A model generated the notes under the pieces. That model was given only the letters and a program-made list of their open reading frames with translations. It had not been told where the DNA came from and did not search any database. The position numbers and the translations under genes are program-made. Below, one piece after another: positions 1 to 39,000 of a DNA stretch of 64,000 nucleotides. The DNA is from Thalia democratica (lineage: Eukaryota): the NCBI GenBank assembly GCA_965202585.1, contig OZ241832.1, positions 51,894,001 through 51,958,000 of the forward strand, read 5' to 3'. Positions within the stretch are counted from its first letter, which is position 1, and each line of letters opens with the position of its first letter.

Positions 1-3000
1 GAAGTTTTCTAGAATTATGTAATTAAAGCCACATTAGCATTTAATATTTCAGCTTTGTTCATAAATTCAACTACGAAATAGCTAAAAAGTTGAGCAAAAT
101 ACAAAACTGTAATTGTTTACACATACTGACTGTAAAATACAAATAATCGCAGAACTACGTATTTAAATGTTAAGTAATATAGTTCACTGAATCTAAAAAT
201 GTTGTTCAGTTCGACACAGCTTATGTTTTTTTATTATTCACGAAACAAAAAGTGATTAAAATCAGTTCGGAAACTAATATTTTTAACTGGCCACTTAAAA
301 TAGAAAGATTTTGATTTAGAACAGTTGTAAAAAATTTTTGAAATCTATCTTTAAGTAGACTTTTAACTGAAAAAAAAAAGAATCAGATACTGTCGAGTAA
401 CTTTTATGTATGAAATTTATAAACAAAATAGTTGATATTAATCAACTGTTTTATGATAGTAATATTTTTACTTGTTTGTAGAAAATCTACGATAAGCTTT
501 ACTTGACCTTTTTACTCTATGACGTTGGTTTTTGCTTAAACTTACTGTAAATCTTCCAGAAAATGCACTAGAGATGCTAATTAAATGGTTTGGTAAGACT
601 TTGAAAAAAAAAAACATTAGCATATTTTAACAGCTTATTATAAATGTAAAATTCAAAATAATTTTATTCTAACATGTATCAGAAATTGTTGTTGTTATGC
701 TATATGTAAATCTGATTGCAGCAAAGATTAATTTAGTTTATAATTACTAAAAATATTCTAATTAATTTAAGTTTCCTTTAGTTTAAAATAAAACTGTATA
801 CTCTTTTTCAATTAGTTTTTAAGAGTTTAAATAAAGTATTCTTGGTATATCTTTTATACTTTATCAACATGTCCAAAAAAGGAGCTTTAAAAAAAATAGA
901 AATAGAGAATATTTTAAGCAGTTTCAAAATAGTAATACTTAAAATAACTCTCTATGAAGTTTTATATTGTTTAAGTCATTTTACTAAATATAAAAAAATT
1001 TTAAGCCAAATTAGCTGTAAGTAAGACACGCAAATTTATTAAAAAATGTGTAAAAAAATAGTTAGTGTATTAATGTCTACAAAATGCCAGTAGATTACTT
1101 ATATTCACAAAAATTTACAGTTTTGTCACATGTTAGTAATACTGTTGTTTGTGAAACATCTTTCTTAAATAATGTTTCTTTAAAGAAATAATTACGAGAT
1201 TAAAAGCTAATTTAGTAATTTTAAAGATATTTAACCATCTTTTGATATTTAACTAAAGAGAAGTAAGAGAATGGTTTAAAGTTTTAAAGAAATAGTTCTT
1301 AAGGCTATTACTTTAGTTTTATTATGTTTTATTCATGTTTTTAAAAAAATTCGTAAAAAAATTGTTTGTTTCAGTTTTTTTTTAATTTAATTCATAGAAT
1401 GCTGTATTGATTTTAGTTTAAAAATTTTGTACACATTTTTTTCTCTTTTCAAAGTTTTTACTTTTCTTCAAAAATATATCATAATTATAAGATGATAAAT
1501 ATCTTATAAATTTAAATGATTTCCTAGGACTTGGAAGACTTTTTAAATTACAAAAATGAATTTCTAAAAAATTTATTATTTGACTAAAAATATATAGATA
1601 ATTTACTATTAGATTGTTAAACTGTTTTCTTTAGTTAAACCCAGAAAACACTTTATTTTTCCAACTGACTCTAGGCTAGTTAAATTTTATTACTTGAATG
1701 ACAGAAAAAATTACAAATTTTAAGTAAATTTAAGAACTAGGCATTATTTTCTTTAAGAAACTAACGGAATAAATGCAGCTCTAAAAACAAGACAGTATGT
1801 GAAGTAAATAATTTTTACAATACAAGCTTTAATAAATATATATATAAGTAAAATATTTTTATCAATACATCACCGGTTTTAAAAGTATGTCGGTTAGAAA
1901 AATAAGTTAGCTTGAGAAACTGTTAAAAATGATGTGTTTTTAATACTTGCTTTTCTTATTAAACTAGTTTATAATTTTTGCTGGTTTTAAAGTATTTTCA
2001 TAAAACTAGTCTCATATAGTTTCATACTACGAACATTTTTTAATGATAGTACCAATTACAATATAGACTTTCTTAGTGCTACATTGCTTTCACTAATTTA
2101 AGTAAACTGCCTATAAAAAATTAACTTTAGTAAATGTTTTTTTTTATCAATAAATATCTATGTATATGTAAATTTTTAGACTATTTTACCGTAACAGTTT
2201 AAAAAAAACTAAAAAAAAAATTTAGACATCGTTATATAAACTAAAAAAATATATTTCATTATTACCAATGCAGTTTGTTTTTAGTAAAAGTAGTATCTAA
2301 AATAATTAAGTTGCCTAGTATTAAAGAATACCTAGTATTAACTACAATTTACCAAAAAGCTTTTATTTTTATTTGTTACAAAACTGTAGAAATGGGTATA
2401 ATGAAATGTATGAAAAAGAATAAAAAGGACAAAAACTTCATCTTCGACGTCGAAAGCGTGATTGAGCGTCTTTTGAAGCCGGCAGACATGAAGCGGAAAT
2501 GCGGAGTGAAAAAGCGGCTGAAAGTGACCGAGTTGGAAATTGAAGTCATGTGCAAAAAGGTCAGCAACATCCTGATTGGCCAGCCCATGCTGCTCGAGCT
2601 AGAATCCCCCGTGAACGTCTGCGGCGACATCCACGGCCAGTTTAATGATCTGAAGAAGCTCTTCTCGGTCGGAGGGTATCCCCCTTTTCGAAACTACCTC
2701 TTTTTGGGGGATTACGTCGACCGGGGCAAGAACTCGGTCGAAACTTTACTATTATTGATGGCATTCAAAATAAAATTTCCCAAAAATTTTTTCGTCATCA
2801 GGGGCAACCACGAGAGCGATGACGTCAACAAAAGCTACGGCTTCTACGACGAGTGCAAGCGTAAGTACAGCGCAAAAGCGTGGAGAAACTTCAACGACGT
2901 GTTCCGCTGCCTGCCCGTGGCTGCCGTCGTCGCGGGAAAAATATTCTGCTGCCACGGAGGGATTTCCCCCCATCTCGAAACACTCGACCAGATCAGGCAC

Positions 3001-4409: not shown

Positions 4410-7038
4410 TTATAATGAACTCAAAACTAAAACAACAATCCAAAGTAACAAAAGTACATAGTTGTATTTTAACGGATTGGAAGAATTATCTGTGTCTTCG
4501 TTTAAGTCGTCATCAGCGAGCAATCCATTTTGACGGATGAGAATTTCGTCAATTGTTTTCACGTTGCAGTGATCGTTTTCACAACAGACTGCGTCGCATT
4601 CTCTGTTATTAAAAACAATTTTTTGAAATCTATATCAAACTTTGAAAAGATACGAATGAGCTGTGTCATACAATCATGTACGTACAAGGTATAAAAAATT
4701 TGAATAGTTTTATTTAACTTACAGAATTATTAAAAATTTTCTTAGTTTTTCAGTAGAAAATGGTTTTATTTGATTAAAAAAATTCTATTTGAATTAGATT
4801 TATTTAAGCACTGACGAGGTCTTTGACCGAAACTTAGTTTGTAAAATAAAGTCTTGAAAGAATAAATTCACTATTTATCCTTTAGTAGTTGAGATCTTTT
4901 TTTTTTGTTTTCTAAAAATCAAAACATATAATAGAAAATGGTAATTAAACTTTCTACTTAAACCGTATCATACAAATTAAGCCTAAACTAAAAACTTTTA
5001 CAAGTATATACAAAAATTGCAATGTTTTCTTTGAACAGCTTTAATGAAAAGCATTAATTAATAAAAAAGATCTGTAGTTATGCAAAAAGTATAAGCAAAA
5101 AATATTATAAATTGACTTACATAAACTGATGATGCTGAAAATCGTGCTTGTGAAATTTTTCTCCTGTAAGATTTGTTAACTTCTGACAGTGCAAATTAGT
5201 GCAGTGTTCCTCCACAGTACAGTAACCAAATGTCCATTGAACTGTCATAAAATTATTCTTAATGAAAGAATTTAAAGAGAGTGCGCGTCAAAAAGTTGAT
5301 TGTATGAAATATATACATACTTTAAAAATAAAGATAATGCATGTGTTTGTTATTAATAATTAGGCATAAACATCATTAATTCTATGTTTTCTATACATTT
5401 GCATAACATATGTGTATAACAAATTTTCTCCGTTTGGACGCTAAGGAATGAACTTGTTAACATAGTTTTAAAGTAGTTACAATTTGTTAATTGATGCTAT
5501 GACTATTTAAATTTTTTTTTTTACAATATCAGACTTAAGAACAAATTTAGGTATACACTAGCTTATAATGTAACTTAAAGAAAAACATTTCTAGTAGAAT
5601 CTTTATTCAATAAATTTGGTTTGATGGTTGAAGTTTAGCGTCAAGCTTAAATAGTTCATTTAGGACTGTTTGATTTTTACTTTGTAAAGTTTTAGATTTT
5701 CTACTGACAAAAATACAGTTTTTTATACAAATATTTTTTAAAATAAGTTTAAGTCAGTAGAAAACATAAAAAAAAACATTCAGAATCTTTTGAAAAACTG
5801 TGTTTTGGAAGTGTTCTATGAATTTTTATTAATCAAAATGTTAAACTAAGTTCGACATTTGTAGCAAGCAATTTCTTTCAATGTAACACAAGCAACTGAA
5901 ACAAAAAATTACACTTAATGAAAGTTTCTTGCACGTTTCACTAATGTTCCCATGCCAACTCTGCAGAAAACACGCAAAATCTTGTCTTTTTGCCAAAATT
6001 AACAAAATTGCTTCTGCCCGACGACTTATGAAAAATCCCCTCAATTAAGAGTCGTGACGACTCGGGGCATTTTGCAGCAGCAATTTAACCACGAGTCGTG
6101 TGTGAAAATTTATGAAACGTAAACAAGAAGCTGGAGGCTTCCGTCGAGTGTTAGAGGCGTGAAAATTAATCTGATCAACAGAGTCGCGCTTACGTAGGTA
6201 GGATGCAAATAGCACAACCCGATTAATTCGATCTGATGTTTGTTTGAATAACGAAGTTTGAAAATTTTTCGGGCGATATTCTTTAATGTCTATGTTTACA
6301 CATATTCTACAATGAAATAGTAAATAAAAAGTTTGTACTGTACAATATTTGTGCTACAAAAAATTTAAAAAATGACTATAGGTAATTAAAAAACATTGAT
6401 TTACTTGTTTAATACTATTTTATAATAAAATTTTAAAACTTTAGTTTTGGTTTAGTTTGATTTTTTTATTTCGTAAAAATAGGAAACTTGTTCGAAGTAA
6501 AGTATAATATATTGATATGATAAAATTTAGTTGAAACAAATTTAATCTAGTGACCTACTAATGTAAAAAAAAATTATTTGTATAATATTTTTAGTGTATT
6601 AATATTATAGTAAACATAGACTTATAAAACTCTTAAGTTTAATAGTTTTTCAAATGTTAAAAATATTGAGTGTAAAATATATTGCTTTGTACTTAACAAA
6701 ATAAATAAAGTCAAGCACAATAAAAATATTACACCAAATATACAAGCTTTTTCTTGCTTACAAAATTCAAAGTAAATTTGGTAAAACCAACTTCGTAAAA
6801 ACTTCTAACTAAAACAAATCTTACCGTCGAAGTGTCCGGCTGATTTTGAAAACACATTTGCCCTGACGCACTTGTTTTCAGTGGGACCACATTCTTCTGT
6901 CAGGTTGTACGCAACTTCTGGCGGGATAAAAACTGATTTGACATCAAGGATCTTCTGACATTTCAGCCCGTTTACAAAGCTCTTTTCTAACAGACTCGAA
7001 AAGCTTGAAAGCAACGCTAGTAGCAAACTAAATTTCAT
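4410..7038 (-). CDS. Ly6/uPAR (three-finger, Quiver/Sleepless-like) secreted protein with GPI-anchor-like C-terminus, 175 aa; exons 7038-6825, 5241-5121, 4602-4410
   Basis: Three exons join in frame (phase 1, then phase 2) with GT-AG sites. The product has a signal peptide (MKFSLLLALL...), 10 Cys ending in the LU signature CCENDHCN, then DNSS and a hydrophobic end (YVLLLLWIVVLVLSSL*). Confidence 0.88.
4799..4850 (+). ncRNA. Minimal type I hammerhead ribozyme motif (Penelope-pLTR type)
   Basis: CTGACGA (4811-4817), stem II GGTC-TTT-GACC, GAAA, stem III ACT-T-AGT, cleavage triplet GTT, and an interrupted stem I (TTTATTT..GCA / TGT..AAATAAA). Confidence 0.75.
5850..6290. promoter_or_regulatory. 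GC-enriched intronic island, candidate cis-regulatory element
   Basis: Non-coding island in Ly6 intron 1 with an octamer ATGCAAAT (6203-6210), several TAAT/ATTA cores and the palindrome GAGTCG-TGA-CGACTC (6049-6063). Confidence 0.35.
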
Positions 7039-30051: not shown

Positions 30052-33000
30052 TTATAATTCGTCCTTCTTGTTGAGTTCTTCTTCTTCTGGTAACTCGTCA
30101 TCTGCGTCTTCTTCAACATCCTCCTAAAAAAATATTATATGTTTAGCATTTTTATCCAGTTTATGTTGATTTTTATTAAGAAATAAAATTACCTGTTTGG
30201 GTTGCTATAAAGAGTTAATCAAAGAAATATTACAACTAAATGAAAATAGAATCTATATTTCTATTTTAGCAATTTATTAAATTATGACAATAGAAAAACA
30301 CTCTTTTAAAAAGGCTTAATAAAAATTGTAGATATACAAATAAGGACACAACTATAAACTTTTCTAAGATACGTCTTACTTTATAAATTTTATCATAAAT
30401 AAAATTTATGCTGAAGGAAATATTAATAGTTTGTATTTCTTTTTTTTACATAATTACTACTCAATATTTCAAAAAATTCTCAAACTTTTCTTTCTGATCT
30501 AAACTTTCAGCGTCCGCAAACATATGATAAATAAAACAGGACAAAAATAAATAAAACAAAATCTGTATAGTCAAAATCTAAAGTTCTTTGTGTTCTGTCT
30601 TCTTCTCCTCTGCAGCTTCCTTCTTCTTGCCCATGAACTCGCCGGCGGCCATCTCGGCGTCCTTCCTCACCGCTTCCTCGGTCGCCTTCTGCATGGCCTC
30701 CTCCGTGTCCTTGCCGTCCAGGCCCATGCCCTTCATCATCATCTCCATCTGCTGCTGCATGCCCTTCATGAAGTCGTCGTCCGAAGGCACCATCTTGTCC
30801 ATCATCTCCGCGAACCACCGGTCCAGTTCCTCCATGTGCTGCGTCTCGTCCGCCTTCTCGTGATCGATCAGGTCCTGTGTGACGTCATAACGAGGTTGAG
30901 ACGGTTATTTGTGAGGTCACTGCAAACCACCGGCACTCCAAAAAGTCTATTTCACGTCAAAACGGAAGACCTAGTCTAAAACTCCATAAAAGAAGAGCTT
31001 TTAGGCATTTCAAGTCTCTACCAAACAGCAACGCAGACATCCTAATGTGACGTCATAATAAACTTTTCGTGTCATTCACGTGACTTTAAACCACCAAGTT
31101 TCTACAATACTTCAAAGTAAAACCCTAGATCTATTCAGATAAACAATCTCAAAAATGTCTACAACTCAAAACATGTTTCTACAAATCATACAAACGTCTA
31201 CAAAAAAAATCTAACATTTTTGCTTACCGTGACGTGCTGTTTGTAAAATGGCTGTAGAACAAAATAATGATAAATAAATAGTAAAAGACTGATACATAAT
31301 TTGATGAAAAATTTTTCTTTACCTCTGTTGGCGGTTCCATACCAGTGTAATGGTTGTGTTCCTACAATTTTTTTAATTTATTCAATTTTTGCCTCAACTT
31401 TCAGAATCTACTCAAACCAACTCATGTCCTCACTGCAAAGAAAACTATCTCTATAGAATATCAAACCACTAACTTTCTAGCTATCAGGAAAATATCAGAA
31501 AAATAATCGGCTAATCAGAAAAAAATATTTCCACAACCGTAAAAATCACCACTACTTTTAAACCTACAAAACTTTCCTTTGACGTAGTAACAATAGATCT
31601 AAACGGTACTTTTTTGATGCAAAGAAAGCATCTAGAACTTTCAAACAATTTATATATATATATATATAACTAAACACCAAACTACGTCTACCTCGTCAAA
31701 CTCTTCGTCTACGTTGGCACTTACGTCGGCTCCGTTCGACCTGACGAACTTTTCCATGGCTTCGACTTCGCGGTCTCCGCTGTAGTCCACAACCTTGTCA
31801 CTTCCCTGTTGGTGTCAATATATAATGAGCATATGTTATTATTCACATTAAGTTATTATATACTAACTATTAATAAGTTTCAATATGCGTTGACAACACT
31901 TAATAGGTTTTAAGTTTAAAATTTAACAGAAAGACGAAATTTAAAAGGTAAATTAAAATGTTTGGCTTTTTTTTTTCTTTTAAAATTAACTGAATTATTT
32001 TATTTTAAAATTATTTCAAGCCAAAAATCTTTTAATTGTGAGAATTAAAATAAATTATTAAAAAATATATATCCGGTTTTTAAGTTTTAAAAATACTTTT
32101 TAATTAGGCGCCAAAAATTTTGAGTCATTTCAGTACAAAGTTTTCTAAAATGCAGCAATAAAGACACGTTTATTTGCCACGCACAAAAGAAAAACTAAAA
32201 CTACGTGTAGGCAGCTAAGAGTTCTATAACTGTGTTTCCGCAAAGCGTGGAGTAATTCAAACAATATTAAAAATATTTTTTGTTTTAAAAATGTTAGTGT
32301 GCGCTGTTAAAAAGCAGCAAACTTACGGATGGGAAGAACTTCAAAGTGGGGAATCCCTGGATCTCGAACTCTGACACCTCGTTGGCGGTGGAGTCCATCT
32401 TGGCGATTATGACGTCATCGTCGTCCTTGAAGGCCTCGCCGAGTTTGTCCCATTTGGGCGCCAGTTGCTTGCAGTGGCCGCACCACGGAGCGTCTAAACG
32501 GAAGCACTAATGACTAATTCTATTCTATGTATTAATACGTGTGTAAGCGAATATTGTGTGTAAGCTAAGGTGTAGTTAGAATTTTAAATATTATATCAGA
32601 GCTGGGACTTGCTATATATATATTATTTTTAGTTTTAAACAGAACCCTTCAATACCTTCAAATACTAATGATTTTTAAAGGCAGTAGTATTTGTAAAAAC
32701 GAAGTTTTAAAAAAATAAACGTTTAGAAATATAAACCTATTTGACACTTTACAAACTAACCAATCTAAATAGTGCATTTTTATATACTAGCTAATTGATG
32801 AATGTTGACTTGTCTTAAAACAATGAAAAACGAGAAAGACAATAGAGTTTAATGAACTTATTCAAAAGGGTACTCGAATATTTCAAGTGCTTTCAAAGTA
32901 AACTGGCCACACTATCATGCAATAAAAAACGTTAAAACTATGCTGCTGTGTTTTTAATGCGTTTTGTAATTTCAGTAACTTAAACAGAGGTTTTATTTAG

Positions 33001-36000
33001 ACAAACTATGACACGTTTTGATTTTTAGAAAAGTGAATGAGCAACTAATCATTTGATTGTAGTCAATTAAATGATACACTAGTTATAAAAATACACCGTT
33101 TGTCAATTTCACTTGAAAGTTTAACAAACACTTTTTGTTACCTTTTGAAAACCACAAAAAGAGAGCTTATTTCTAGATCTATGCTAAAACCTTCTAAAAA
33201 ACCTTCTAAACTGCAACCTACATTTTTTAACGTACTTTCAACGGGTCAAATTTTGGGAAGAAGAGCATTGTGGGGTAAGCGCCCACGAATTTAAACCCGG
33301 GAATGTCATTTTTAGTAGCGTCTATTTTGGCGATGACAACGTCGGGATCTTTTTTGAATTTATCTGCAAGTCGCAGCCATGTGCCGTACATCGCGTGTGA
33401 ATGCTCACACCAAGGCGCGTCTGAACACAACAAGTTGAAAAATCAGTACAATACTTGGAATTAATGAGAAGTATGTTTACTAACTCACAAAATGTATTCT
33501 GTTTATAAATGGCTTGGAAACCAATGAGATGTTCACTTGATTATCTACCTTGCTTATCAACGCAATAAACAGCTAAGCCTTGGATTTTAGTAGAAATTAA
33601 AGTGGAAAATTTATTTTAAGTTCAAAACTTAAGGTCTTATTACAAATGTTAGTCTGTGAACTAATACAAAACTTTGGATAAAATGTGATGTTATTTGATC
33701 TAAATGACGCGTGAAAAACTCACAGAATTCGACGAAGACCTTCTTAGTGGAATCGAAAGCGACCTCCTTGAAGTTCTTTCCGACGAGGACAGAGACAGGG
33801 TTCTTGTTCCAGTCTTCTGGGATCTCTTCCGACATCAAGTGGCGGGCAATTTCTCCGGACATGACTCCGGCGGCGAACTTGGTGACTGCTTCGGCTGACA
33901 AGTCTTGTCCTTCCGGCTTGAACTTAGCCATGTTTTCTGCCATTTTGATCACCCTGTAGGTTGGCACGTCCTTTTCGGAGAGTCCGAAGAATTCCATCAC
34001 TCTCTTGTTCTCCTCGACGTCAGAGTCGATGTAGATGAACAACATCTGTTGGTGAAAATTTGTTTTATTGTTTAGTTTGTGTACACTGGTATTCAAATTT
34101 AAATCACTAGTTTTTAAACTTTGATGAAAATGGATAACAATTTTTTATATGTGAAATTAAAATAGTTAAGTCCCTTAGAGTACGTCCTAAAAAAACTTCC
34201 AAGTTTTCAAATGTACAATGTGTTACTGAGGTTAAGTTGCCACTCACCTTTCCTTTGAACTCCTTGGCGGCAGTCCTGAAAGCGTCGGTCTGAGCTTTGA
34301 ACTCTTCAGACTTTTTGGAGAGGAAGAGAAGTGCGTGGTTCTGGATATCTCCACCGAAGATTTTGGGGGCAGACTGTTTTGAGTTGGAAATCATTTACTT
34401 GCTTCATTGTTTTTTTTTTACTTTTATATTTTCAGAATTAGTAACTTCTGTTTATATTAGAAAAAATTGTCTTTCTTTTTGTAAATAATTTCAACAAATG
34501 AATATGTTTATACTTAGTTATTCCTATACTATGATATAATACTTTTTGGTTCAAAATTTTTTTTTTTTCATTTTGTTTAAAGTTTTTACGTTTTAACTAA
34601 TAAGTCACACTTTAAATCACACAACTATTGAAAATATTTTCTAATAAGCAACCACTATCAAAAAAAAACAACAAAAATTCTAACCAACAGCAATTTAAAA
34701 ATTTTTAATTAACATTTGAAAGTAACTTTGACATAAGTGCCATTCAACAAACAAAATATTAAAGCTGTTAAAATTTGTTTGGACTTGAAATTTTAAAATT
34801 TTTAGTCACACTAACCTCGCTGGTGAATTCAGAGAGAAGAGCGATCTGGTTTCCTTTGACGAATTTGGCAAGGTCATCGGCGATGGCACCTTCGAAGTCA
34901 GCGCGTCCTTCGTCGAACTAACACCACAAATAAAAATAAGCAAAAAAAACTACTAAAAATCAACACTTCTACTAATAAAATATCTACAAAGTTCACAGCA
35001 TTCTCAGGTCACGTTAGAACCTTATCTGAGAACTCTTCTAGCAGCGGGTGCTGCTCCCCTTTAATGTCAACTATTAAGTTGTCTCCGCTTTTGTAAATGG
35101 CAGAAAGTGAACCCTAGGTTTTTACTTAAAAATGAAATACATAAAAAGTGGAGAAAGTGTTTACTTCCACAAGTAGTTAGTGTTATGAAGAGTATACATT
35201 TTTTATAAAAGTATCTATTATAAAAGTGGCTTCCAATCAAAAACAAGTTGAAAATTATTTTCATTCAATTTATTAAAAACTGTGACAAAATTTCTCATAA
35301 ATACCTTTTTGAAGACAGCAACTTTGCCAAGTTCAAGACCGGCAGCCTTGGCGGTGGCAGCATCAGAGACTACAAAGAATGGGACATCATCGAAAGAATC
35401 AGCAACCTTGGTGAAAGCTGCACCTTCTTCACTTGATGGATCCTAGTTAAATTTTGATTTTATTATTTACACATTTTATTATTTAGCTGTTATTAATACT
35501 ACTTATTAAACTATCAAGTTTACTTTAAGTAGTTAATCTTTTAAGTTGTATTTTGTGAGATTTAAATAAGTTTGATAGCAACTAATCTTACATATATTTT
35601 TTTATTGTTAACCATTTATGGATGTTCAAGTGTTGTTAAATAAAATTACATAACTAACGAAATATGTAAAGTACTGTGTTTAATCTCTAGGGTTCTAATA
35701 CATTTAGTCAGAAAAAAGTTGTCTATAGATAATTTAAATGTAAAAAGGAAGTAAGAGAAGGATGTTATGATAAATGAGCCACATGACTACTAGAAATTAC
35801 CAATAAGTTATATCAACTAACAGCAAAGTATCCGACAACAGCAACTTCATTGGCGTCCTTAGCCTTGTTGAGGGCTTCTTCTCCGGACAATGGGGTTGTT
35901 GGTGGTCCGGTCTTTTTCTTGAGCCAGTTGACAATGTCAGCAGATTGACGTCCACCTATTGTTAATGAGTTTAAATAATTACAAGAATAAATTTTCTTAA

Positions 36001-39000
36001 AAAGCTTATGTTTATATAGAAAAATTATTTCAATATGTTTTTTTACATTATCTGATTTAAAGAAAATATTTTAGTGTAAATGTTAGAATAATATTTATTA
36101 AAAACCTACTAAAAAAGTTTTTTCTTATAAAACCAAAAAACTTAAGGTAATAAAATTAATTAAAAAACAAAAGCATAAGTAATAACTACTATTCAATAAC
36201 CACCATTAAAATAAACACACACACTGCTGCTTATATTGCAATTCTCTATTGACACGGAAACTGCCTAAGGCAAATTCACAATAAGAACTAGTAGCTGTTA
36301 CAACAATCCTAGAAACCAATATATTTATATTCATTTTACACACTACTACGTGGCTATAGCAAGGAAATAAACAGCACGCTTGTCAGCTTGCCATTGTAAG
36401 TTGTCTGGTGGTCACCGTGGTTTTTCCAAAAGAAAAATGTTGGGTACCCTTTTACATGGAACCTCTTAACGGTTTTTGGGTTGGCATCACCATCAAGCTT
36501 TGCTAGTTTACAATCGGGTATGTCAGTAAGCAATTGAGTGGCTGCTTTTTTGTAATCCTTGTCCATGTGAATGCAGTGTGTGCACCATGGGGCGTCTGAA
36601 AATTAATTCAAATTTTAAACATGCATATTAGAACTATTATTTACCGCCGTATTCCTTGGCCTCTCCGTTCTTAAAGAACTTCAAAGTTGGGTATCCTCTG
36701 ACTTCGAACTTCTCAGCTGCCTTCTTGTGGATGGTGGCGTCAACTTTGGCCAGTTTGATTTCAGATTCTTCAGCAAGGAGGGCACCTGCAGCTTTGGCGT
36801 ATTCGGGAGCCAAGGCTTTGCAGTGGCCGCACCATGGGGCGTCTTAATTGTTTGATTGTTAAAATAAAAGTTCATTTTTTACATATTATAATTACATACA
36901 TAATAAAGTTAAATTTCATGGGGCGTCTTAATTGTTTGTCATGATTATTAATCAAGTTAATTATTAGTTACATAATAAGCTACATGATTAAGTTTTTAGC
37001 TTTTCAGAATAAAAAAAAATACAACAATTAATTGATTATAATTTAGTTTTGTTATCTTATTAAGTGAAAAAAAACATTTAATTGTATATAATTTTGTTTT
37101 GTTACTTTAATAAATTTTGATAGTAAAAAAAACAACATTTAATTGTTTTTCATTAAGCTCAGATAAGTATTTTATTATAAGTAATATTAAGTATTAATAT
37201 TAGTAACAAAGTACAACAATTAAATGTTTATAATTTAGTTTTGTTACTTTATTAAATTTTGATACTAAGAAAAAAATACACTCAATTATTTATAAGCTCA
37301 GATAAGTATTTAATTATAAATTACATTTTAAGCTTATAACCTAATTATAGGGATTAGTAATTGTATCCAACTTTAAAGATTAAGTTTCTAGAAAACTATA
37401 AATTTATGGAGTAAAACAAGACAATTTCAATTTTTGTATTAGCCAAGTTATGTTAATATAAGGTTTTATAACAGTTAACCCTAACCTAAAGTCAATTTTC
37501 ACAACTTAAGTTGTAAAACTTTTTTGAGCTTTTTAACTTACTCAGCTTTTTGGTTATTGAAAATTAAAAACATTACAAAAACTAACATTTTAAATATAGT
37601 CAACTAAGAATAATAACATGGTATTTTAAAATTTTAGTATGCCTGATTTTTTTTAACTTATGATAATAAAATTGTTTTAGCACTGCTTTTACGGCGTCAT
37701 GATTTTTTGCATTGTAAAAAATTGAATATTAAAATATAGTTACTTTTTTATACTGACTCCCAAAAAAATTTTTATTTTTGGAAAAACATTTAGTAAAAAA
37801 ATATTAAACTTTAAAAACAAAAGAAAGATTTAAAAATACTGGTTTCACCTTTTTGTAAATTATTTTATAAACTTGATTGCAAGCATATAATCTTACAACT
37901 TATCTAATAACTAAATTCATTGTCTTTCTTCTCTTCCTTTAGAATTTATTTAAAATATTTTTTTTATAAAAGTAGAAAATCTTTGCTAACTATTTTGAAG
38001 TTTATATATTCAAAAAGACTACTTTGGTAAACATACTTATTAATACTAAGAAAATAGGCTTCTGATGTTATGCTGCAAAATATACTAAAATGGCTGAACA
38101 CATTTTATCAATAATTAATTACTTCAAGAATACAACTATTGTATAAAACAAACTTCAAAATTTGTTAAGTTTTATAAGAAAATTATTTAATAAAAGAAAC
38201 AGTTTCTCAACAATTTTTTTATAATTGAAAAATATTTAAGTAATAAAAAGATAAGTAGTTATATAACATAAAACAGATTTCTGCACATTTATCATTGTGT
38301 TATTTTTATATCTTGATTAAAATTTTTAAACAAATCAAAATTCTTATTTTTCATTAATATCTTAACATGTCATACTTTCAACATATTATTAAATCTGTAG
38401 TGCATTTAAATGACAAATTTAACAGAAAATTTGAATAGAAAATATATATTAAACATTTAACAAAACAGCTTCAAATAAAACCAGCATTGAATTGACAAGA
38501 TACATTAAAAATTGAAAGGACTCATAAGTCAAAATTTAAGATATTATTTAAGATATATTATTTAATATTAGTTTGTGTTAAAACACATATGAATATTCAA
38601 ATTATATTAATTTTAAGACAAATAATAGTAAAAACCATTTTCTGAAAACTAAAATACTACTGTGGTAAAGTATTACTGAAATTATATTTAAATTTTTACT
38701 AAAACTTCAACTAAAACTGAATAAATTGAGGAATTTTAAAATGATCTTTAAAACTTTCAAATAAATAAACAAAAATAAAAACCAAAATGAATTAAACAAT
38801 GTGTTTGCAATCTGCTTATATATATTTCCTTTCTTAAATAGTCAGTTATATTCCTGACAAAACTATATAGCTTTTAATTTAACAATGAAAATTGTTTGTA
38901 AACTATTTGTTAGTTGATATTGATCAAACCCTAAACTTAATAAAAAAACAAAAACTGAATATACTATTATTTGGTAGTTGCATATATAAGTTAAACAAAA

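Follow-up and report, generated by a model that had tools for sequence, protein, structure and literature searches.

The question raised by this locus is whether a second, single-cysteine a' exon in a protein disulfide isomerase (PDI) gene is a working alternative to the canonical one. The gene (PDIA1/P4HB type, domain order a-b-b'-a') lies on the minus strand of a 64,000-nt stretch of Thalia democratica (OZ241832.1 positions 51,894,001-51,958,000), referred to here as the window. A variant a' exon, exon A, stands 742 nt upstream of its homologue, the canonical exon B. The active site of exon A is of the CxxS type, with one cysteine and a serine replacing the resolving cysteine. The results below indicate that exon A is very probably a genuine, ancient and selectively maintained alternative exon, derived from a duplication of the a' exon that is older than the divergence of the tunicate lineages sampled. 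It is spliced instead of exon B and gives a minor, full-length isoform, retained in the endoplasmic reticulum (ER), with CGHC in the a domain and CEHS in the a' domain.

Exon A in transcripts of close relatives

CEHS cDNAs were found by screening the homologues from a full-length search for the active-site motif and then listing cluster members. P0166, a JGI protein of 511 aa, carries WCGHC in a and WCEHS in a'. Its contig (L016, 2032 nt) matches the window exon by exon, with an aligned block at 33433-33235 replacing exon B, and its protein is 93% identical to the exon-A isoform predicted from the window. Two further proteins of a single JGI sample, P0297 (HKEL tail, contig L019) and P0292 (KDEL tail, contig L020), match the predicted isoform at 98.6% and 98.2% identity and differ from it at 1 or 2 residues inside exon A. 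At full length both have the architecture Thioredoxin, Thioredoxin_6, Thioredoxin, with KDEL or HKEL at the C-terminus. Their contigs, with a nucleotide identity of 86-94% to the window, align upstream and then over 34047-33724, 33420-33235 and from 31805 onward.

The junctions 33724 to 33420 and 33236 to 31805, anticipated in an earlier note made from the sequence of this DNA, are exactly those found in the three cDNAs, all from very close relatives. This use in cDNA, together with the sequence and the splice sites, bears out the note's reading of 33236-33420 as a real a' exon lacking the resolving cysteine. The note had also proposed an internal acceptor at 31793, 12 nt into the next exon. 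That proposal did not hold, as all three cDNAs splice to 31805 and the protein across the junction, FDPLK followed by G(S/G)DKVVDY, is the one expected from the regular acceptor.

The L019 and L020 contigs are identical over their first 1212 nt and show 16 differences within exon A (1213-1398), 15 of them synonymous. This may reflect two co-occurring lineages collapsed by the assembler or an unusual diversity of the exon.

The canonical route was seen in four marine (meta)transcriptome runs (X1, X6, X2 and X5, from two studies), whose contigs were aligned to window positions 31500-37400 with a likeness cut of 90%. Junctions 33724 to 32493 and 32326/7 to 31805, which join exon B to its neighbours, were present in all four. 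A constitutive-exon query additionally recovered two canonical full-length cDNAs of relatives among the JGI contigs (L006 and L007). Searches with the exon-A peptide recovered no relative among JGI metagenome contigs, no candidate among the entries of 34-107 aa in a 5.8-billion protein set, and nothing above about 54% identity among 1.84 billion representatives. The last of these nulls is uninformative because isoforms collapse into the cluster of their gene. A region-restricted search with P0166:388-455 returned no further CxxS isoforms.

Exon anatomy

The exons and introns of the a' region are listed in Table 1. All splice sites at the a' exon pair are GT-AG. The upstream constitutive exon ends ...KKVFVEF plus a T, leaving phase 1, at a gtgagt donor. 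With that T carried over from 33724, exon A begins (T)AC GCG CCT TGG TGT GAG CAT TCA and ends AAA, comprising 62 stop-free codons including the split first codon and running from YAPWCEHS to FFPKFDPLK. It is preceded by a pyrimidine-rich acceptor (...gtgttcag) and followed by the donor gtacgt. Exon B, between a tttag acceptor and a gtaagt donor, encodes YAPWCGHC ... FFPS. An alternative donor within the shared downstream exon, at 31724, connects to the HKEL tail. A genome search found exon A in single copy in the 802-Mb assembly, within the PDI gene between constitutive exons.

Table 1. Exons and introns of the a' region of the Thalia democratica PDI gene, in window coordinates.
Feature	Position	Strand	Description
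Upstream constitutive exon	34045..33724	-	End of b', x-linker and start of a'; RNA junctions and cDNA alignments
Intron between upstream exon and exon A	33723..33421	-	303 nt, GTGAGT...TTCAG; spliced out of L016, L019 and L020
Exon A, variant a' exon	33420..33236	-	185 nt, phase 1 to 0, WCEHS; AG/GT splice sites; 3 cDNA contigs
Intron between exon A and exon B	33235..32494	-	742 nt, GC 28%
Exon B, canonical a' exon	32493..32327	-	167 nt, phase 1 to 0, WCGHC; RNA-run junctions; major form
Intron between exon B and downstream exon	32326..31806	-	GTAAGT...AACAG
Shared downstream exon	31805..31691	-	RNA-run junction from 32326; cDNAs L019 and L020

Coding character, selection and predicted fold

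Exon A has the composition of a coding exon, with a GC content of 47% (53% at third codon positions, GC3) between introns of 25-30% GC; the GC3 of exon B is 82%. The two exons share 46% of their amino acids, and their nucleotide identity at codon positions 1, 2 and 3 is 62%, 70% and 37%, a pattern which indicates an old duplicate maintained as coding sequence. On its own, exon A scores 34.1 bits against the Pfam Thioredoxin profile PF00085 (cut-off 23.5, profile positions 27-81), compared with 61.7 bits for exon B. The fold-critical residues are intact, including Pro-Trp-Cys, the IAKIDAT strand, the cis-Pro YPT motif and the FF strand.

Substitutions within exon A are overwhelmingly silent. 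Between the window and L019 there are 21 synonymous changes and 1 non-synonymous change (ratio of non-synonymous to synonymous rates, omega, 0.007), and between the window and L020 there are 24 and 2 (omega 0.011). The neighbouring constitutive exon, compared with L019, has 26 and 6 (omega 0.041). Against the more distant L016, omega is about 0.04 for exon A and 0.075 for all other exons together; synonymous divergence is saturated in this comparison, and the raw ratio of non-synonymous to synonymous proportions, 0.12, gives the same conclusion. Judged from these counts, exon A is under strong purifying selection, with a constraint at least equal to that of the constitutive exons.

An AlphaFold2 model of the CEHS a' domain (P0166:357-478, from a 48-row alignment) has a predicted local distance difference test score of 89.1 and a predicted template modelling score of 0.86. 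The order of its strands (E) and helices (H), E-H-E-H-E-E-(E)-H, is that of thioredoxin, and confidence is lower at residues 71-80 and in a lengthened loop at 91-100. Among solved chains, the a' domain of human PDI (4EKZ/4EL1, E 2.9e-33) is the closest match; in the alignment to it, the CEHS domain carries a 4-5-residue insertion in the beta4-beta5 loop.

Frame and exclusivity

The exon lengths and shared phase in Table 1 had been taken in the earlier note to mean that only one of the two exons can be used at a time, and joining the exons in silico agrees; the coordinates, lengths and phases given in the note are likewise correct. With exon A alone or exon B alone the frame is open through the gene. 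Including both brings a stop about 29 codons into exon B, and skipping both gives W-K-stop; the products of double inclusion or double skipping are presumably removed by nonsense-mediated decay. This frame-enforced exclusivity follows automatically once an exon of length 2 mod 3 is duplicated. In the transcripts, each of the 14 members of the P0166 90% cluster, a small sample, contains one a' site (11 CGHC, 3 CEHS), and no junction between exons A and B was found in the four RNA runs aligned to the window. The pair thus shows adjacency, homology, a shared phase, separate splice sites and a frame that breaks on co-inclusion.

The means by which one exon might be chosen over the other was also considered. 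Steric hindrance is ruled out by the length of the intron that separates the two exons. A search for inverted repeats of the docking and selector kind returned AT-rich pairs only, 73-84% complementary and without comparative support. One of these is a 25-nt inverted repeat at 33125-33149 and 31940-31964 (80% complementary), with one arm in the intron after exon A and the other in the intron after exon B. Its pairing would loop out exon B, but it is AT-rich and may be due to chance.

Conservation and origin in tunicates

The nearest named proteins to L006 in a full-length search are those of Ciona, Phallusia, Clavelina and Styela (57-62% identity). This placement, together with the occurrence of the gene in RNA of marine plankton, fits a pelagic tunicate. 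Genomic PDI loci were compared from Clavelina lepadiformis (L013), Ciona intestinalis (L014), Styela clava (L015, based on P0278), lamprey (L017) and abalone (L018). In all three ascidians, representing three orders, an open CxxS exon lies upstream of the CGHC exon, bounded by an AG acceptor and a GT donor in phase. In the Ciona locus (L014) it starts at about 6583 and has its donor at 6765. The variant site is WCKYS in Clavelina (variant and canonical exons of 182 and 182 nt), WCKYS in Ciona (179 and 185 nt) and WCDHS in Styela (182 and 182 nt), and with these lengths the members of each pair are again incompatible in frame. The lamprey and abalone loci have a single a and a single a' exon, with no second copy of either.

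When the exon peptides are placed in a maximum-likelihood tree, all five variant exons group together (97/96 support, recovered in 98% of bootstrap trees). Their clade branches within the PDIA1-type a' exons, and the a-domain exons form a separate clade. The tree is built on 61 columns with long variant branches, so long-branch attraction is possible. The motif IAKID..(T/S)KND is common to the variant exons of the window, L016, Clavelina and Styela, and Ciona has IAKMDATAND. The variant clade, the shared position, the shared serine and the shared residues together indicate a duplication older than the split of the sampled tunicate lineages. The residues between the cysteine and the serine vary (EH, KY or DH). 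All five exons keep the N-terminal cysteine, the tryptophan before it, the serine in place of the second cysteine and the cis-Pro motif.

The comparison also accounts for a peculiarity of the Thalia exons. Both ascidian a' exons end just before (A/V)(L/V)DY, a point 12 nt into the window's downstream exon. Relative to the ascidians, the canonical a' exon of the window is about 15 nt shorter (32327-32341) and the downstream exon 12 nt longer (31793-31805, gaining GSDK). Exon A kept the old length, so its isoform carries both FDPLK and GSDK, and the boundary shift lengthens the beta4-beta5 loop by about 5 residues in the variant isoform only. This explains the homology overlap between FDPLK and GSDK that the earlier note had pointed out and linked to the internal acceptor. 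The overlap is real in evolutionary terms, as the ascidian exon ends attest, and does not describe a current splice site. Judged from those exon ends, the ancestral acceptor position is the one corresponding to 31793, unlike today's acceptor at 31805.

Evidence against a functional exon and its weight

Several observations weigh against exon A being a functional alternative exon. In all four RNA runs the depth over 33273-33469 is zero, and no contig covers exon A. The three CEHS cDNAs were assembled from short metatranscriptome reads of two samples and do not come from the sequenced individual; the pairing of exon A with particular a-domain or tail exons is unphased in them. Finally, CGHC is present at both sites in every annotated ascidian isoform examined (Ciona isoforms X1-X5 and X8, Styela isoforms X1-X3, C. 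savignyi, Phallusia and one Clavelina model, P0167); the CxxS a' isoform is unannotated in the Ciona, Styela and Clavelina gene models examined.

The RNA runs set a limit on the abundance of the isoform. Run X1 has contigs that match the window exactly, at depths of 60-130, none with exon A, which makes exon A a rare form at best in that run. Contigs lose rare variants, and the 90% cut would exclude relatives, whose exon A is 86-88% identical. The lack of coverage in the four runs consequently indicates that the exact species makes little use of exon A in whole-plankton RNA, not that the exon is absent. The exon-A isoform is a minor form.

Expected chemistry of the variant site

The proposed history begins with a tandem duplication of the a' active-site exon, which probably preceded the split of the sampled tunicate lineages. 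Exon A is spliced in place of exon B, the two never occurring together in the transcripts examined. The chemistry expected of the resulting CEHS site is drawn from CGHS mutants of PDI, yeast Eug1p and ERp44. By analogy with these, the site would keep its nucleophilic cysteine and should be unable to form an intramolecular disulfide. Lacking the resolving cysteine, it should be neither chargeable by Ero1 nor active as an oxidase at a', as inferred from CxxS chemistry. The CEHS thiolate could attack substrate disulfides, and the mixed disulfides may last until they are resolved by a thiol of a substrate or of glutathione. In that case the isoform would be biased towards isomerisation or thiol-mediated trapping and retention rather than oxidation at a'. 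Long-lived mixed disulfides on CEHS are an inference from CxxS biochemistry.

A different function is conceivable for the same exon. The variant could be expressed and conserved but non-catalytic, serving as a structural subunit or chaperone, or as a brake that does not accept oxidising equivalents from Ero1, with thiol trapping irrelevant. PDI is a subunit of prolyl 4-hydroxylase and of MTP, and those roles need no active-site cysteines. The variability between the cysteine and the serine and the tolerance of a loop 5 residues longer in the window's lineage would also suit a site that is not used. Against this stands the retention in five of five variant exons of Trp-Cys-x-x-Ser and the cis-Pro, which is unexpected for an idle site and from which we argue that the cysteine is used. 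The contrast is provided by a PDI paralogue of the same genome (L003, described below), in which the a' motif is wholly lost. We regard the non-catalytic role as unlikely, yet deserving of serious attention.

A second explanation, that the relatives transcribe the CEHS forms from a distinct, paralogous PDI gene, is very improbable. It draws on the origin of the cDNAs in related organisms, at the nucleotide identities given above, and on the existence of other PDI paralogues in the window's genome, L003 among them. Exon A nevertheless has a single copy in that genome, inside the PDI gene, and the exon boundaries of the cDNAs equal those of the window one for one. The L019 and L020 cDNAs use the two alternative tails encoded at the window locus, and the canonical and CEHS forms share a single 90% cluster and, away from the swapped exon, match the window at 98% identity. 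The paralogue reading was rejected on this locus-level match.

That exon A is an unused, decaying duplicate, open only by appearance, is scarcely credible and was also rejected: its lack of RNA-run coverage, its GC3 below that of exon B and its absence from all annotated ascidian isoforms examined would fit decay, but the clean exon-exon junctions in three cDNA contigs and the selection on it (omega about 0.01) contradict it, as do the open, splice-site-flanked orthologues in three ascidian orders and a GC content of 47% against 28% in introns.

Other alternative exons and PDI paralogues

The a-domain active-site exon of the gene is tandem-duplicated as well. On the minus strand, a WCGHC exon at 36842-36645 is followed by a WCTHC exon inside an open reading frame at 36602-36357. 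An RNA contig of run X1 covers 36460-36595, within that reading frame, at a depth of about 8, compared with about 64 for the CGHC exon. P0258, a cDNA protein of a relative, has WCTYC in a and a canonical a'. Second a exons are also found in the ascidians (WCVHC in Ciona, WCLPC in Clavelina, WCVHC in Styela) and not in the lamprey or abalone loci.

The tails differ between the CEHS cDNAs. The acidic KDEL tail of L020 is encoded by 31805-31691 and then 30125-29805 (minus strand). The Met-rich HKEL tail of L019 is encoded by 31805-31724, a 39-nt microexon at 31361-31323 and then 30875-30517 (minus strand). In Ciona and Styela the annotated isoforms divide in the same way, KDEL versus KKEL or KQEL.

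The L003 paralogue (G000:C6:26846162-26849335, reading frame 436-1992, minus strand) is an intronless PDI of 518 aa. A membrane anchor stands at its N-terminus, its a site reads WCGYC, and its a' site has decayed to GPGSKQ. It resembles the product of a retrogene, PDI-like but dead at the second site. CxxS sites also occur in unrelated public PDI-family proteins (P0138, P0142, P0020 and P0054), including some of a-b-b'-a' size that pair WCQHC or WCDHC in a with WCQHS in a', and others that are P5-like and carry WCEHS. Sites of the single-cysteine kind have thus evolved repeatedly at a' in separate genes.

Significance and comparison with known systems

PDI is the central ER catalyst of disulfide formation, and the role of its resolving cysteine has been studied mainly through engineered CGHS mutants and odd paralogues. 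The gene described here appears to be a natural switch, with CGHC or CxxS at a', retained from a time before the tunicate lineages sampled here separated. The variant exon, present and unannotated in Ciona and Styela, would offer a direct route to the in vivo role of a single-cysteine PDI site. It also shows that conserved coding exons are missing from present tunicate annotations, and it is a clear instance of exon duplication taking the place of gene duplication in a lineage without the vertebrate genome duplications. A broader proposal is that one gene supplies tunicates with a small PDI family, combining conserved exon pairs at a (CGHC or C-x-[HPY]-C) and a' (CGHC or CxxS) with KDEL or Met-rich (H/K)(K/Q)EL tails, the CxxS-a' form being a dedicated isomerase or thiol-retention form, probably restricted by tissue or stage. 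We offer this tentatively, as a possibility with somewhat less than an even chance of being right.

The window gene is an orthologue-grade match to PDIA1/P4HB, with a signal peptide, a, b, b' and a' domains, an acidic tail and a KDEL-type end, and the best PDB matches are full-length human PDI. The exon-B isoform has CGHC twice, as does PDIA1, and the variant a' domain still matches human a' best. It departs from PDIA1 in that exon choice swaps the a' site to CEHS, so that the exon-A isoform does not have CGHC at both sites.

Mutually exclusive homologous exons arising from tandem duplication are well known. The a' pair resembles them in consisting of adjacent homologues of similar length and the same phase that are incompatible in frame when joined; it differs in that the part exchanged is a catalytic motif, not a binding surface. 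No description of a CGHC/CxxS exon switch in the principal PDI gene was found in the literature searched, which covered few of the subscription journals.

The PDI family has several CxxS members, namely yeast Eug1p (CLHS/CIHS), ERp44 (CRFS), AGR2 (CPHS) and the engineered CGHS mutants of PDI, for which isomerase or mixed-disulfide activity without oxidase cycling is expected. The window, L016, L019 and L020 share with Eug1p, ERp44 and AGR2 the retained N-terminal cysteine and the serine in place of the resolving one, here as WCEHS. Those three proteins are encoded by separate genes, whereas the tunicate CxxS site comes from an alternative exon within the main PDI gene and affects a' only. Given the branching of the variant exons within PDIA1 a' exons and the human PDI a' domain as nearest chain, the variant is not orthologous to ERp44 or Eug1p, and the likeness is convergent.

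PDILT, a PDI-like protein of the vertebrate testis with SKQS/SKKC sites, engages in mixed disulfides and serves a specialised role in its tissue. It shares the PDIA1-like a-b-b'-a' architecture with crippled active sites, and its structure 5XF7 is among the PDB matches. PDILT is a separate paralogue that has lost different cysteines, whereas the tunicate version is an isoform. If the broader proposal of a PDI family run from one gene is true, a single tunicate PDI gene would do by splicing what vertebrates do with paralogues such as PDILT and ERp44.

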